The position numbers and the translations under genes are program-made. A DNA stretch of 63,857 nucleotides, the filler included, from Hyphochytrium catenoides (Eukaryota > Protista > Hyphochytriomycota), in assembly GCA_900088475.1 (NCBI GenBank). It is 4 parts of 4 records of this genome, joined end to end, with 100 filler letters (N's around TTAATTAATTAA, not from the genome) between each part and the next. Parts side by side here need not be neighbours in the genome. Positions count along the whole stretch, not along the records: positions 27,033 to 55,548 come from FLMG01004300.1; 3 more parts are not named here. One strand, 5' to 3'. The notes under the pieces are model-generated. The model did not search any database and was not told the origin of the DNA. It saw only the letters and a list, made by a program, of their open reading frames with translations. Shown here one piece after another: positions 34,656 to 54,004 of the stretch; within the stretch, counting starts at the first letter, position 1, and each line of letters begins with the position of its first letter.

Positions 34656-36477
34656 ATGGATGACAAAGCACGGGCCGCTTCTTCTTCCCCTTCCTCACCC
34701 TCGCGGTCCAAGCTGAAGAGACAAGGAGAAGTTGACGGCACTCATTCCCAGCCTTCCACATTACGCGTCAAAGTTTACAAAGTTAGCGAAGGCCAGACAG
34801 ATGGCAAAGCACCTACAGAAGCTTCAAACAGCCAGAACGTAGAGCTCTCGTCAACACCGAGGAGCCCCATTGTGAGTATACCATTGACGCCCACAGCTTC
34901 CGCAGCCACGCCTAGGCAGGTTCGAATGCCTTTTCGCGTGGTGGCTCCAAACTCCTTTGAGCCTGAGAACCACTTCTACCCTCGGACCCTTAACTCCCAG
35001 ATCCATCCCACAGTGAGGTACTTTATGGGCCTGAGCAAAGAGAGGATCGCCAAGAGATTTTGTCACAATCACCCAGAAGTGGACCCAGCGGTGCTTAGTG
35101 AAGCGCTGGCCTACCAGCCCAAGTACATGCTCTGGGCCGGTTGTGACCTTATGCATACCACCAGCGATCTAGGCAGACGTGATATGGTGGTTATAGAGAC
35201 AAACACCTGCGCCTCGGGCCAGAAGAGCATGCCACTCTTTGAAGAAATGGAAGAAGAGGGCGGATATAAGCTCCTCTTAGAGAGGACCTTCCTCCCTATC
35301 CTGCGGAAGAAGGAAGCTGAGGGAGTACTTCCCGATGGCGGGCTCGCAGTTATCTATGATAAAAATCTGATGGAAGCCTCTGGCTACGCTGCGACTCTAG
35401 CGACATTGTCTGAGGAGACTGTTTACCTTGTGCCTCTGCTAGACCATCGGTTCCTGGAAAACCCAGAATCAGAGAAAGGAGGGATGTTCATCAACGGCGT
35501 CTTGCACATTCGGGATCCTTACTCTATTGAGCCAGAGATGAGGGAATGGCGACCCATTAGGGCGGCTTTCCGCTATGTTACACAGCGGCCTTGGTGCCGT
35601 ATCCCTGTCCAGACAAGAACGCTTATAGTTAATCCTTCAATCAGCTGTCTGGCAGGAGGAAGGAACAAGATGGTGGCGGCCAAGGCGTATGATAACTACA
35701 ACGTAGAACTCCAGGCCTCTGGCTTGCGCATTCGGACGCCGCTAACCATCAGGGATGTACGCTTTGAGGCCATTCCTGAGTGGGTTCGAAGACTTGGAGG
35801 GCATGCCGTAGTAAAGGTTCCCTATAGCAATGCCGGACAAGGAGTGTACACCATAACGAACGACAGAGAGCTCAATGACTTCATAGAGAAAGAGAAAGAC
35901 CAACGGTATGCATTGTTCATTGTTCAGTCTCTGATCAGTAACCACCAATGGTCGTCCAAGTCTTTTGATGGGCATGGTACGACGAGGAAGATGTACCACA
36001 CGGGCACTATCCCAGACAAGAAGGGAAACATCTATGTCGCAGANNNNNNNNNNNNNNNNNNNNNNNNNNNNNNNNNNNNNNNNNNNNNNNNNNNNNNNNN
36101 NNNNTGCCCGCAGAGCTCGTTCGCCGCTGGCTGATACCTTAACAGAGGATGGCCCTTCGTCCTGGGACATGCTGGGAACAAACCTAAGTGTGAAGAAGGG
36201 AGGCGGGCTTTTTGACACTGAGAGTGGCCGACTTCTATTGATGGACAACAAGGACTTTAACACGCTTGGCATGGCAGTAGATGATCTGGTGGACGCCTTT
36301 GTCCAGACTGTCCTGGCGGTTATTGCGATAGACAGGATGGCACAGTTTCTAGCTCCAAATGGAATCTTTGACATCTCTATGTTTCGCTCAGTGAACAATG
36401 ATCCGGCGCTGCTCGAAGAGATAAATCTGGACGGAGTTGCGGAGGCAAGAAGGAAGCAGAGCGAAAATCTCTGTTAA
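34656..36477 (+). CDS. Circularly permuted ATP-grasp family amide/peptide ligase (uncharacterised), intronless, interrupted by an N gap at 36044-36104
   Basis: About 600 aa across the gap. AGCDLMH..MVVIETNTCASG (D...ExN metal-binding strands) lies N-terminal to GGRNKMVAAKAY, AVVKVPYSNAGQGV (Lys + Gly loop), FIVQSLI and IYVAD. The C-terminal part, ARRARSPL..SWDMLGTNLS..RLLLMD.KDFN.LG, is in the post-gap frame. Confidence 0.85.
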
Positions 36478-37851
36478 GAGTTTTGGAAGAGAGAGTATCT
36501 CTCTGCCTCTGTGCGCGCCACCTCTTCACCTCGTGCTTCATTGGTTCCTCTTCTTGGTTCCCCCTATCTCTCTTCCTCCTCTTATGACCATTATTCGCTT
36601 GTTATGACGTCTCCTATCTCTGTGTCCTATCCCCTTGGTCTGCGCTGCTCAAGCTCTAACTAGCTATCGGGGTGCGCGTTCATTGAAGCTCGGGTGAGAG
36701 ACTAGAACGATTGTCTGGTCTATTCATTAGCTATTTTTAAATCTGTAGCCCTAGCTCTACCGAGGGGCCAAGTTACTCTAACCCGTAAGACAGACCGTCT
36801 GGTCTATTCCTCCTTTCTTTGCTCGTGTGGCAATGTCAGGATTCCTCTTTTGCTCTGGTTTATCCACCTGTCCATCAAGAGAGGAAGGAGTCTATTCTCT
36901 GTGATAGCAGCTATTTGGTCGCGACAACAACCTCTTGTAAAGCCGCTTGTTCACCCAAAGAAGGAGCAAGGGCTGCCACAACGTAGACCCGACTGGCTCA
37001 CCAAACGCGAGAACGAGATGCCATAACAAAACGTTTGCTCTATCTAGAAGCTTTCTCCGGGGTTAAGACAGCTTGCAGCTCTCTCCCTCTTATTAGCGGG
37101 AAAAAAAAAAGCCTAAGGGTTTCGGGAAGGAAGGCTGTGAAGTGATTGGAGGAGACAGCGTAGCTCTTAGCATTTACCAGATGTAAAGACCAAGCTCTCA
37201 AGACAAATCTTGTCCTAGACATGCCCTGGCCCCACCATCAAATCACTGCGGGACCATCTGTGTCCCACGCCGTTAGCTAGCAGCTCTTCTGGTCATGCCG
37301 TTCAACCGGTCCATACGTCCTGGACGAGAAATTACGTCCCTTTTCGAAGTAACAAGAATAAGTGGGACCGTCAAAAGGGAGCTGTCGTGGCCCAGGGTTA
37401 TGGTAAGCTTACACCAAGCTTCTTCGACTTCAGTGGAGCTGGAGAAAATGCTTCAGAGTTTCGTCTCAAAGCTACTTTCCTTAGACTAAGAAATGACAAG
37501 GTTCAGATGATTGATGAGTCGCCACGCATAACGATCCTTCCTAATCAAAGGTCCGTATGTGCACTGCAGAGATGCAGAGATGGCCTGAGGAGTGGAGGCT
37601 GGAGCTGCTGCTCTACTTTGTTGAATGGTCGTAGAGGGAGGCGAAGAAAGAAGATCTCAAATGAAGATTTTATCGAAGATTCATGAAGATTCTCTGTGGA
37701 TTTTGTTTTCTGTTCTCTGTGCCACTCAGAGCCGCGCCAGCCTTGTAATTCTGTGCAAGTTGCAAGTACAAGTACTGATACTCGTACCGTTATTACAAGT
37801 ATTGCTGGGAATTGGATATAACTCTCTGCAGAGAAAGAAAGAGGAAAAAGA

Positions 37852-43342: not shown

Positions 43343-44260
43343 TTAGCAGATCTTTGCAACCTTCGCAGCTCTAACCACGGGGTTCTGCTCTGCAAGCTTT
43401 CTCTTGTTGCTCAACTTGTAGTCAAACGTGCACTTGTGCGACTCTGCCATTCGGTGCGATGTGCAGAAGGTGTAACCGCACCGGCAGGTGACTGCCGCTA
43501 AGGGGACCTTCTTGCTGCATTCCCAGCATTTTCTTCTGTTCTTCTGGACTGGCTTGGCCTCCTCTACCGGAGCGGGAGCAGGCGAGATAGAGACTGAGGG
43601 AGAGGAGAGAGATACTAGAGGAGAGAGAGGGGCAACAGCTGCCTCTGCAATTCGTCTGTTGAAGACGGCGGCAGACGATGGAGACCGAGAGAGACGAGAA
43701 AAGTCGATGAATCTGCCTGTTCTACCGTCCAGGTTCTCAAAGACATTCATCAGCTGCTTCTCTCTTACGCCAAGCATGTGTGCAAGGGAGCTGAAGACGA
43801 CGGTATCGTCATTGAGCTGCTCATCGTACTCGCCGTCCTCTTCTTCATCATCGTAGTCCGAGAAAGAGTCTTCATCTTCCGAGTCTCCATTTGACATTGC
43901 ACTGTAGGTACTGACAATCTTTGCAATCACAGCAAGCTTGTACCGCTGTTCAGGAGTCAAGGTTATTGTCTGTCGTCTGGAAAGCTCTGGAACTGATGGC
44001 ACGAAGGCCTCTGTCCCTATCGAGCTTGGTAAGCCGCCGTCTGTGCTGCTACTACTATTCCTATTGATCGGGCTATTGCTGCTTCGGCCAGATGGAGACT
44101 CAGCTGAGAGACCCAAAGGTGCTACTGAGGTGTTAATGGCGGGAGGGGCCACGCGGGCGCCATCACACTCGCACTTGCCGCTAGTGGCGCTGCTGGACAC
44201 AGCTTCTGGCTGAGGAACAGAGGCCAGAGGCTCCTTGCCGATGTCGTTGTTATTGTTCAT
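43343..44260 (-). CDS. AN1-type zinc-finger protein (ZFAND5/6 / plant SAP-like C-terminus, no A20 finger)
   Basis: C-terminal CWECSKKVPLAAVTCRCGYTFCTSHRMAESHKCTFDYK..LAEQNPVVRAAKVAKI; uninterrupted 305-aa ORF. Confidence 0.93.
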   Translation of the reverse strand: MNNNNDIGKEPLASVPQPEAVSSSATSGKCECDGARVAPPAINTSVAPLGLSAESPSGRSSNSPINRNSSSSTDGGLPSSIGTEAFVPSVPELSRRQTITLTPEQRYKLAVIAKIVSTYSAMSNGDSEDEDSFSDYDDEEEDGEYDEQLNDDTVVFSSLAHMLGVREKQLMNVFENLDGRTGRFIDFSRLSRSPSSAAVFNRRIAEAAVAPLSPLVSLSSPSVSISPAPAPVEEAKPVQKNRRKCWECSKKVPLAAVTCRCGYTFCTSHRMAESHKCTFDYKLSNKRKLAEQNPVVRAAKVAKIC

Positions 44261-50483: not shown

Positions 50484-51242
50484 ATGTCCTCCTCTGCGTC
50501 GAAGCTTCAGATTGGCCTCGTTGGCGCCGGTAACATCGGCACCGCCCTAGCGCGTCATTTCCGGCGCATCGGCCACGACGTACTTCTGTCAAACTCACGT
50601 GGTCCGGAGACTCTCGCAGACCTTGCCAAACAACTGAATGTGAAGGCTGTCACGAATGCCGAAGCGGCGAAGGCAAAGGACATCGTCGTCATCTCGATAC
50701 CCATGGTATTCACGCCCAAGCTGAAGCCCCTCTTTGAAGCTGTACCGAGCTCGGTCATCGTCATCGATACCAACAATTACTATCCCGGTTTTCGCGATGA
50801 CATAATCGATGAGATCGAAACCTCGCAGATCGATAGTGCCTGGGTTGCGAAGCAGATTGGTCGTCCCGTCGTGAAGGCATTCAACTCAATCGGCCACCGG
50901 AGTCTAGAGACGTTGGGGAAACCGAAGGGCGCGGCAGGGCGCGTCGCACTCGCAGTTAGCGGCGAGCCAGAGGAGCATCGCAAGCGTGTGATGGATCTAG
51001 TTGATGCCATCGGGTTTGATCCAATTGACAATGGCGATCTTTCCAACTCTTGGCGTCAGCAGCCAGGCACGCCCGGCTATTGCGAGGACCTCAGCGCCGA
51101 GGACTTACGAGAACGTCTCGCCTCGGCTGAGAAGAAGAGACTAGCCGAATACCGGGCTGCGTCAGAGGAGATGGCGCGCAAGTACGCCCCAGAGATGGTC
51201 GAACAGCAGCGGCACGCAGTAAGGAAGCATCAGATAACTTGA
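50484..51242 (+). CDS. NADP(H)-dependent oxidoreductase, F420_oxidored / NADPH:F420 reductase-like family, bacterial type, intronless
   Basis: IGLVGAGNIG (Rossmann), SNSRGPETL, VIDTNNYYPGFRD, VVKAFNSI, RVALAVSG and DAIGFDPIDNGDLSNSWRQQPGTPGYC are typical of this bacterial family. Confidence 0.93.
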   Translation: MSSSASKLQIGLVGAGNIGTALARHFRRIGHDVLLSNSRGPETLADLAKQLNVKAVTNAEAAKAKDIVVISIPMVFTPKLKPLFEAVPSSVIVIDTNNYYPGFRDDIIDEIETSQIDSAWVAKQIGRPVVKAFNSIGHRSLETLGKPKGAAGRVALAVSGEPEEHRKRVMDLVDAIGFDPIDNGDLSNSWRQQPGTPGYCEDLSAEDLRERLASAEKKRLAEYRAASEEMARKYAPEMVEQQRHAVRKHQIT

Positions 51243-53170: not shown

Positions 53171-54004
53171 ATGGCTATCAAAGCGTGGTATATGGATGAT
53201 TCCGAAGAGGATCAGCGGCTGCCGCATAAGCAGGAACCCTACAACCCAGTTGATGCCACTGTTTTGGAGCGCCTGGGCGTCCTTTACTGGCAGCTAGACC
53301 CCAACCTTCCAGCTGAAGACCCTGCCTTGGCAAAGATCAAGGAGGAACGGGGCTATAACTACACGTGCGTAGGAGTCCTACTCTAAAGTCCTACGTCGTC
53401 TTCTACTAGAACGTACAATCTTCTTACGGCTGGCGCTGACTACTAGAAGCACCCTTCGTCTCTTAGCTCTTCTGGACTCTACTTGCAGCTCTCACCCTCT
53501 TTGCCATACATTAAGCACCAGTGGAGCGCCCGGAGCACAGATCCATTTGCTCTTACCGCTTCGTTCTTTTTTTTTTCCAAAGCTTTTTGCCTGCAACCCT
53601 CTGGAGCAATGATCTTACAGATGCTAACCTTCGAGGTCCGTCTTCTCAGGGATGTTATCACTATTTCCAAGGATAAACTGCCTAACTATGAAGAGAAGAT
53701 CAAGACGTTCTTTGAGGAGCACATCCACACCGACGAAGAGATCCGCCTCTGTCTGGAAGGGTCAGGATACTTTGACATTCGAGATGCCGAGGATCAATGG
53801 ATTCGCGTGCATTTGAAGGCCGGAGAGATGATTGTTCTTCCAGCGGGCAGCTATCATCGCTTTACCTTGGACTCTGACAACTATATCAAAGCCATGAGGC
53901 TGTTTCAAGGAGACCCCGTCTGGACTCCTCTGAATCGGCCACATGAGTCCGACCATACGAAGGCACGGCTTCACTATGTAGAGCAGTATCTGTCTCGACC
54001 CTAG
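53171..54004 (+). CDS. ADI1: Acireductone dioxygenase (methionine salvage, cupin), copy 1; intron 53365-53649
   Basis: [26 protein letters not shown]|[74 protein letters not shown]. The H-x-H-x3-E...H metal ligands are intact. Confidence 0.97.

Follow-up and report, generated by a model that had tools for sequence, protein, structure and literature searches.

A predicted circularly permuted ATP-grasp ligase of an unnamed family in Hyphochytrium catenoides, with bacterial gene partners that point toward a small-molecule amide

Introduction

What does a ligase make when its fold can be recognized, its gene stands without introns in a eukaryotic genome and none of its relatives has a name? The question is raised by positions 34656-36477 of the window, that is, the whole stretch of DNA that was analyzed (63,857 nucleotides from Hyphochytrium catenoides, four parts of the genome joined end to end). 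The first-pass annotation, made from the sequence alone, described this locus as the intronless gene of a circularly permuted ATP-grasp ligase, perhaps a peptide-ligating or tagging enzyme and possibly acquired from bacteria. Few families that are so large and so conserved are still without a Pfam model, a structure, a name and a known product. We conclude with high confidence that the locus encodes a functional ligase of the permuted ATP-grasp class, from an unnamed family and with a predicted function; the fuller statement, in which this enzyme belongs to a pathway of small-molecule amide metabolism, is one that we hold with moderate confidence.

Results

The gene is intron-free and its frame is continuous

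The locus is a single open reading frame (ORF) on the forward strand, broken only by an assembly gap that is written as 61 N (Table 1). Taken at this length, the gap places the second piece of the ORF at +1 relative to the first, that is, one base out of frame. We therefore compared public Logan contigs with the stretch 35300-36900 of the window. The gap is crossed unbroken by a 2,136-letter contig (run X1) and a 1,235-letter contig (run X2), each with two letters more than the window, and a low-depth contig from run X3 likewise bridges it with two extra letters; thus, the true gap is 63 nt, the frame continues and the frameshift that was looked for at this point is not there. X1 and X2 are different samples, each with its own single-nucleotide polymorphisms (SNPs), but both belong to a single study, possibly the one that gave rise to the assembly; the continuity of the frame is judged by the length of the bridge and not by the 63 gap letters themselves. 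A gap of 63 nt corresponds to 22 codons between ...GNIYVA and ARRARSPL; the homologs have 19-21 residues across this region (DLRMMV...GF..V..Y), and the partial codons that flank the gap (ga- and -t) are compatible with the D and Y of the homologs. Judged by these homologs, the gap should encode the DxR strand with the family-invariant residues D, R, G and Y.

With the gap taken as 63 nt, the gene is 1,824 nt long (607 codons and a stop). Residues 1 to ~95 form a Ser/Pro-rich extension that is not conserved; comparison with homologs places the start of the conserved body at about residue 97, and M92 (at 34929) is a possible alternative start. A bacterial homolog is collinear with the window over 34935-36423 in tblastn, which bears out the claim that the gene has no introns. 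The protein has the family residue at 79 of the 83 columns that are invariant in an alignment of 55 homologs (alignment A2) and differs at none; the remaining four columns (D, R, G and Y) fall in the gap. All six strain SNPs in the well-covered X1 and X2 contigs are synonymous, third-position changes (6/6), and the sole non-synonymous difference is in the 3.8x X3 contig. On our reading, this is a working nuclear gene without introns, ~607 codons in length.

Table 1. Coordinates of the ligase gene, its motifs and other genes on the same piece of the window
Feature	Position	Strand	Remarks
CDS (coding sequence) piece 1	34656..36043	+	ATG 34656; 462 codons + 2 bases
Assembly gap	36044..36104	.	61 N written; 63 nt in bridging contigs, hence in frame
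CDS piece 2	36105..36477	+	1 base + 123 codons + TAA stop 36475-36477
DMVVIETN strand	35181..35204	+	residues 176-183; E181 and N183 invariant
GGRNKMVAAKAYD (GGRNK...AAKAYD motif)	35655..35693	+	residues 334-346; K338 and K343 invariant
KVPYSNAGQGV	35814..35846	+	residues 387-397; ATP-binding Lys K387 and Gly-rich flexible loop
FIVQ	35916..35927	+	residues 421-424; hinge strand, invariant Q424 (adenine side)
LGTNLS	36172..36189	+	after gap; T-N-L-S invariant
RLLLMDNKDFN	36229..36261	+	after gap; short strand, nearly invariant Asp
zf-AN1 zinc-finger protein ORF	43343-44260	-	
Pyrroline-5-carboxylate-reductase-like ORF	50484-51242	+	F420_oxidored / NAD_binding
Acireductone dioxygenase (ARD) gene	53171-54004	+	two exons; exon 1 from ATG 53171; exon 2 = Pfam ARD positions 56-157

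The order of the motifs is that of a permuted ATP-grasp

The first-pass annotation had placed the IETN strand before the NK, KVPYSNAGQGV and FIVQ motifs, and the translated ORF confirms it: the order is DMVVIETN, GGRNK...AAKAYD, KVPYSNAGQGV, FIVQ, the gap, LGTNLS and RLLLMDNKDFN. K343 pairs in the alignment with the Lys that is conserved in the GshB/RimK motif, and LGTNLS pairs in hhalign with the N-x-x-GG motif of a GshB-like protein that is encoded beside many bacterial homologs (see below). The residues of an ATP-grasp active site are present and invariant (K387 with its loop, Q424, TNLS, E181/N183 and the C-terminal Asp), and the DxR strand falls in the unread gap. By their sequence context E181 and N183 would be the E-x-N ligands of Mg2+, and the near-C-terminal Asp of RLLLMDNKDFN a probable third metal ligand. 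In classical ATP-grasp enzymes the E-x-N metal ligands lie within the last ~50 residues, where they follow the strand equivalent to RLLLMDNKDFN; an E-x-N strand ahead of the central domain is the signature of permutation.

A structural model aligns with permuted enzymes from its N-terminal part

An AlphaFold2 model was made from the Galdieria homolog (P0002) with alignment A2; its mean pLDDT (predicted local distance difference test) is 90 and its pTM (predicted template modeling score) 0.91. In a Foldseek search of the PDB, the first 34 ranks are all entries of the permuted class, led by 3k1t, 3n6x, eukaryotic glutathione and homoglutathione synthetases, E. coli GspS, YgiC/YjfC, the E-64 ligase Cp1B and trypanothione synthetase; the first classical chain, synapsin, is found at rank 35. 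The ATP-grasp fold sought by structure search is therefore found in the model of this homolog.

VIA-align was used for a second look at the matches and for an exhaustive search over 48,161 chains. The ranking is led, by about 4 Z units, by 3k1t, a putative gamma-glutamylcysteine synthetase from Methylobacillus flagellatus (Z 17.7; model 69-480 against chain 15-423; 331 residues, rmsd, root-mean-square deviation, 4.1). The next best match, LysX/ArgX (Z 13.9; model 162-473 against chain 1-230 of 281), is classical; human glutathione synthetase 2hgs (model 5-455 against chain 10-474) and the CP-ATP-grasp protein 3n6x (model 16-444 against chain 51-469) both have Z 13.0, and E. coli GshB 1gsa has Z 10.7 (model 161-477 against chain 1-266 of 314). 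The classical folds LysX/ArgX, Ddl, RimK and GshB score Z 10.7-13.9 over 206-247 residues.

The two classes separate by where the alignments begin. The classical chains (LysX, Ddl, RimK, GshB, PurK and CPS) are aligned only from about residue 161 of the model (161-474), and their final 40-50 residues, the site of E-x-N, are left unmatched; permuted chains match from starting points at model residues 5-69. The N-terminal beta-hairpin of the model (P0002 residues 96-120) terminates in the invariant E-T-N. This collinearity with permuted chains upholds the permutation that had been read from the motifs, and by the model the window protein is an ATP-grasp of the circularly permuted class. When the family is compared with the GshB-like proteins by hhalign (E 0.098), the motifs pair sensibly and no separate match of the N-terminal E-x-N is obtained; this comparison thus did not bring out the permutation at the sequence level. 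In the ESM Atlas, the family's own clusters are unnamed, and the nearest named clusters are PF08886 GshA (TM, template modeling score, 0.57/0.65) and CP_ATPgrasp_1/2 (~0.5).

The family is large, conserved and unnamed

Neither CDS piece matches any Pfam model at E<=1, the models for GSH_synth, GSP_synth, CP_ATPgrasp, TTL and PF08886 included. With NCBIfam, the window pieces give only sub-threshold matches to RimK (E 0.003, residues 325-431) and GshB, and this weak RimK/GshB hidden Markov model (HMM) signal covers the central domain. No PDB sequence is matched at E<=10 by the window protein (phmmer) or by the family profile A2, and a bacterial member (P0010) matches neither PF08886 nor its NCBIfam counterpart at E<=0.001.

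Relatives are nevertheless abundant. A word search retrieved more than 3,600 proteins of ~480-500 amino acids with 55-61% identity, all of them "hypothetical" and none with a precomputed Pfam domain; an exhaustive profile search gave 937 representatives at 50% identity (311 at E<=1e-30), and among the best 150 matches listed there are only family members and fragments. The long "fusion" members offer no domain that is informative; one of them probably arose by the merging of its gene model with an RFC1-like AAA protein. Bacterial members are found in Myxococcota (Enhygromyxa, Kofleriaceae, Polyangia), Saprospiraceae/Lewinellaceae, Planctomycetes, Sulfidibacter and others; red algal and stramenopile members in Galdieria, Cyanidiococcus and Paraphysomonas; green members in ferns, lycophytes, Sphagnum, liverworts, Ginkgo, Taxus, Cryptomeria, Closterium and Botryococcus; and other eukaryotic members in Podila and its relatives (Mortierellaceae), Naegleria fowleri and Reticulomyxa. 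The window protein is 61% identical to the Galdieria homolog and 57% identical to bacterial proteins; from Myxococcota to ferns the identity stays at 55-65% (a fern and a Kofleriaceae member share ~64%). The streptophyte members range from a charophyte through bryophytes, lycophytes and ferns to gymnosperms; the best 120 matches of a fern query include no angiosperm, and this suggests loss in flowering plants. A search of the literature found nothing on this ligase family. The family is large, unnamed and strongly conserved, and it is without a Pfam model or a solved structure.

Two members have features of their own. In the liverwort Marchantia polymorpha, the copy (P0138) bears the locus tag Mp_Vg00360, a name that would put it on the male (V) sex chromosome. 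The homolog of Cyanidiococcus yangmingshanensis (L086 10001-12148) has 715 amino acids, and its tblastn blocks overlap (query 16-205 and 127-486), which suggests an internal insertion or a partial duplication of ~80 residues plus a linker; the relatives P0012, P0062 and P0076 are comparably long.

Bacterial homologs have recurrent genomic partners

The first-pass annotation had named the gene neighborhoods of bacterial homologs among its checks. We retrieved 80 bacterial loci, with a single genome for each species, called the ORFs, clustered the neighbors, scanned representatives and recounted by tblastn; the counts refer to the 64 loci with at least 2.5 kb downstream and to neighbors within 3 kb. 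The most constant partner is a zinc amidohydrolase of the AstE/AspA family (PF24827; best sub-threshold NCBIfam match, DoeB), found at 48/64 loci. A classical ATP-grasp protein of the GshB/RimK type (PF02955; 122 bits against a glutathione synthase cut-off of 272) is found at 35/64, and the two occur together at 34/64; an MscS channel is encoded at 11/64, and seven loci (7/64) have none of the three. The order is ligase, GshB-like, AstE in Saprospiraceae and ligase, AstE, GshB-like in Planctomycetes; in Myxococcota the ligase is followed by AstE, or the genes form divergent or convergent pairs. Because adjacency persists while the order changes, functional linkage explains the arrangement better than inherited synteny.

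One eukaryotic locus has a neighbor of a related kind. In Naegleria fowleri, the homolog is followed on its strand by the gene of a true RimK-family alpha-L-glutamate ligase, which scores 222 bits with TIGR00768 (cut-off 143); its UniRef name is "N-acetylaspartylglutamate synthase". This protein is only 26% identical to the bacterial GshB-like partner, so the family is linked to ligases from two different RimK/GshB branches. The pair is present on two near-duplicate contigs (L084 7440-10586 and L085 7873-11001), both with ABC transporters upstream and a kinase/guanylate cyclase downstream, which are probably assemblies or alleles of one locus. The RimK ortholog of N. lovaniensis sits at a contig end, and beside the RimK homologs that were looked up in Willaertia and Acrasis there is no called gene of the ligase's size that lacks a Pfam match.

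Other recurrences are restricted to single lineages. Just upstream of the operon in Saprospiraceae (L009, L015, L022, L035, L066 and others), genes for SET-domain proteins, DksA/TraR-type zinc fingers and small histidine-kinase fragments recur, and a few loci encode an arginine-decarboxylase-like pyridoxal-phosphate enzyme; the recurring upstream genes may reflect lineage synteny rather than function. In Phaeodactylibacter/Lewinellaceae (L016, L018, L021, L024, L027, L029 and L048), MscS and formate-tetrahydrofolate ligase replace the GshB-like and AstE-like genes, and a class IV aminotransferase fragment is found upstream.

The gene is at home in a eukaryotic genome

A quick IQ-TREE phylogeny (81 rows, LG+C20) places the window protein in a eukaryote-only clade with Paraphysomonas, Galdieria, Cyanidiococcus and unnamed sequences (SH-aLRT, Shimodaira-Hasegawa-like approximate likelihood ratio test, 100). 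A separate clade (SH-aLRT 98) is made up of green algae and plants and lies among rows from Myxococcota, Alphaproteobacteria and Sulfidibacter; Podila, Naegleria and Reticulomyxa are deeper branches. Union of the red/ochrophyte and green clades is not rejected in an approximately unbiased (AU) test (log-likelihood difference 42.7, p 0.07), in which the group was chosen after the tree had been seen.

The composition of the gene (GC 0.52; GC at third codon positions, GC3, 0.55-0.59) resembles that of neighboring genes (GC3 0.56-0.64). The same 28.5-kb piece holds the zf-AN1 gene, the pyrroline-5-carboxylate-reductase-like ORF and the intron-split ARD gene (Table 1); the ARD intron is ~290 nt long and of the spliceosomal type, so the surroundings of the ligase gene are eukaryotic. 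The orthologs of Galdieria sulphuraria (Gasu_38420) and Cyanidiococcus are also intron-free and flanked by ordinary eukaryotic genes; introns are present in the fern and Podila genes of the family.

From the eukaryote-only clade, the matching GC3 and the AU result, any transfer must be old: the gene is old and compositionally at home in this genome, and it is no recent import. An acquisition from bacteria, as was suggested earlier, would thus have been an old one; exchange between bacteria and eukaryotes is plausible, in one direction or the other and once or more than once. Sharing between red algae and an ochrophyte would fit passage via a red-algal plastid ancestor.

In the 3' flank of the ligase gene (36655-36770), X1 and X2 each have two alternative contigs, one that agrees with the window and one that differs from it by four substitutions and a deletion of 5 nt, a pattern that resembles variation between alleles or strains.

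Discussion

A predicted small-molecule ligase

Judged by its fold, its invariant ATP-grasp residues and its nearest relatives, the enzyme is probably a carboxylate-amine ligase that depends on ATP and would use the acyl-phosphate route. K387, the Gly-rich loop and Q424 would grip ATP, which would lie between the central domain and the C-terminal domain; E181 and N183 of the N-terminal strand pair, together with the Asp near the C-terminus, would bind Mg2+; the carboxylate of the substrate would be converted to an acyl-phosphate, and attack by an amine would give the amide. "An amide-bond ligase of unknown product", the wording of the first-pass annotation, is still the right description.

We nevertheless favor a small acidic metabolite as the substrate and a gamma-glutamyl-type or N-acyl-amino-acid-type dipeptide as the product. 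The nearest structural relatives with known or annotated functions are, from the closest, gamma-Glu-Cys ligase, glutathione synthetase, GspS and Cp1B; in each of these reactions an amino acid or an amine is coupled to a small acidic molecule, which favors the small-molecule reading. Characterized relatives of the AstE/AspA-type partner cleave N-succinyl-Glu, N-acetyl-Asp and N-acetyl-diaminobutyrate, and members of the RimK/GshB clade add Gly or Glu to a terminal carboxylate. In bacteria, the neighboring GshB/RimK-like ligase may therefore extend the product and the neighboring AstE/AspA-type zinc amidohydrolase may break it down, a make-extend-break module like the metabolism of glutathione, N-acetylaspartylglutamate (NAAG) or glutathionylspermidine. 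The occasional MscS neighbor hints, weakly, at a role as a solute. The roles of the catalytic residues, the small-molecule substrate and the logic of the pathway are all inferred.

Tentatively, and as a single joint proposal that we regard as possible rather than probable, we suggest an undescribed pathway in which the permuted ligase, frequently a second ligase of the RimK/GshB type and an AstE/AspA-type amidohydrolase between them build up and break down a glutathione- or NAAG-like acidic peptide in Myxococcota and Saprospiraceae, and that is at least partly retained in red algae, ochrophytes, green algae, every land-plant lineage (except, apparently, angiosperms), Mortierellaceae, Naegleria and Foraminifera.

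Several points weigh against a small-molecule pathway in Hyphochytrium catenoides, or against parts of it. The model is that of a 61%-identical homolog and not of the window protein, and E181/N183 are assigned to the ATP site by alignment ranges and invariance rather than by three-dimensional coordinates. RNA support for the window gene was not found in one RNA run. No partner gene is near the ligase at the window, Galdieria, Cyanidiococcus and Podila loci, and the Atlas cluster of the bacterial GshB-like partner is 99% bacterial, with no eukaryotic cluster, so the logic of the pathway may not transfer to this organism. For an enzyme of small molecules, the 55-65% identity that bacterial and plant members share is unusually high and could mean a macromolecular substrate; RimK and M14-like hydrolases also work on protein C-termini.

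The last two points lead to the alternative that survives best, a ligase that modifies proteins or peptides by adding an amino acid to a side chain or the C-terminus of a conserved protein, with the RimK/GshB-like neighbor elongating the tail and the AstE/AspA (M14-like) enzyme trimming it, in the manner of TTLL glutamylases with CCP deglutamylases, or of RimK with ribosomal protein S6. Such an enzyme would account for RimK-family neighbors in both bacteria and Naegleria, and identity as high as that between Myxococcota and ferns is more often found in enzymes that bind to conserved macromolecules; 3n6x and other CP_ATPgrasp relatives are predicted peptide ligases, and TTLL chains are in the fold list (Z 8.7-11.2). 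However, the TTLL matches are limited to the common core and the TTL HMM is without a match, so TTL/TTLL membership is rejected; the closest folds (3k1t, eukaryotic glutathione synthetase, GspS, YgiC/YjfC and Cp1B) act on small molecules or are so titled; AstE, AspA and DoeB are known as N-acyl-amino-acid hydrolases; and no small ORF or candidate target protein recurs in the 64 neighborhoods. We consider protein modification unlikely. Of the earlier peptide-ligation or tagging enzyme, the ligase thus stands, and tagging is less favored than a small-molecule product.

That the family is simply a diverged branch of the PF08886 glutamate-cysteine ligases, the type known from Acidithiobacillus ferrooxidans, making bacterial glutathione together with the adjacent GshB-like gene, we judge very unlikely. 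The annotation of 3k1t, the best structural match, the position of PF08886 GshA as the nearest named Atlas cluster and an order of ligase and then GshB-like gene that resembles gshA-gshB all speak for it; yet PF08886 and its NCBIfam counterpart go unmatched at E<=1, the family profile matches no PDB sequence at E<=10, the GshB-like neighbor scores below the glutathione synthase cut-off, the amidohydrolase is a more constant partner than GshB (48 against 35 of 64), and plants and red algae already have a canonical glutamate-cysteine ligase.

It is scarcely credible that this is no working eukaryotic gene at all: the absence of introns, the 57% identity to bacterial proteins, the N gap inside the ORF and the RNA result would suit bacterial contamination in the scaffold or a pseudogene broken within the gap, but this is opposed by the intron-bearing eukaryotic genes (zf-AN1, ARD) on the same piece, by equal GC and GC3, by the placement in the eukaryote-only clade and by the likewise intron-free Galdieria and Cyanidiococcus orthologs amid eukaryotic genes, and by the bridging contigs that restore the frame, with every readable invariant residue retained and the well-supported SNPs synonymous.

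What is gained here is a confident fold, a nearest relative (the PF08886-type putative gamma-glutamylcysteine ligase) and a recurrent genomic partnership that points toward the product. Tractable carriers of the gene (Marchantia, Galdieria and cultured Enhygromyxa salina) make the question directly testable. Should the product prove to be a new thiol, osmolyte or signaling peptide, it would be a further part of core metabolism, common to bacteria and many eukaryotes and apparently lost in flowering plants.

Comparison with known systems

The closest system is PF08886/3k1t "GshA", the rare Acidithiobacillus ferrooxidans type of glutamate-cysteine ligase. The two have similar sizes and the same order of elements, with 331/424 residues matched collinearly over model residues 69-480, and presumably share acyl-phosphate chemistry; also, a GshB-like gene follows the bacterial ligase as gshB follows gshA. 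However, no sequence relation is detectable with Pfam, NCBIfam or a profile search of PDB sequences (identity in the structural alignment is 15%), and the new family differs in its extra helical N-terminal part, its AstE/AspA partner and its phyletic range, into which many eukaryotes fall.

Eukaryotic glutathione synthetase (2hgs, 1m0w, 3kal) is a permuted ATP-grasp that is collinear with the model from the N-terminus. In the human enzyme, the E-x-N metal ligands (E144/N146) are likewise ahead of the central domain. The likeness is one of fold only (Z 12-13.6); the rmsd exceeds 5 Å, the identity is 10-13%, and GSH_synth_ATP and GSH_synthase are unmatched at E<=1, so the window protein is no ortholog and a canonical glutathione synthetase is rejected.

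The GspS family (E. coli GspS, YgiC/YjfC and trypanothione synthetase) consists of permuted amide ligases with Z 12.5-13, and its combination of a synthetase with an amidase for the same bond resembles the pairing of ligase and AstE/AspA described here. In GspS the amidase is a fused CHAP domain, whereas this family pairs with a separate zinc amidohydrolase; the GSP_synth HMM is also unmatched at E<=1, and GspS is rejected as an assignment. The first-pass annotation had, by eye, found the motifs of these two families lacking. The CP_ATPgrasp_1/2 system (PF04174/PF14403; 3n6x) shares the permuted fold (Z 13.0, TM ~0.5), but its HMMs are unmatched and its typical Alpha-E/transglutaminase partners are not among the recurrent neighbors, which are AstE/AspA, GshB-like and MscS instead, the rare neighbors not all having been scanned.

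The remaining parallel concerns the partners. In mammals, a RimK-type ligase (RIMKLA or RIMKLB) makes NAAG or beta-citrylglutamate, and an AstE/AspA-type enzyme, aspartoacylase, hydrolyzes N-acetylaspartate. The mammalian system thus combines a RimK-type ligase with an AstE/AspA hydrolase, that is, two of the three families in the bacterial operons; its first step is catalyzed by an acetyltransferase rather than an ATP-grasp enzyme, and the likeness is an analogy only.

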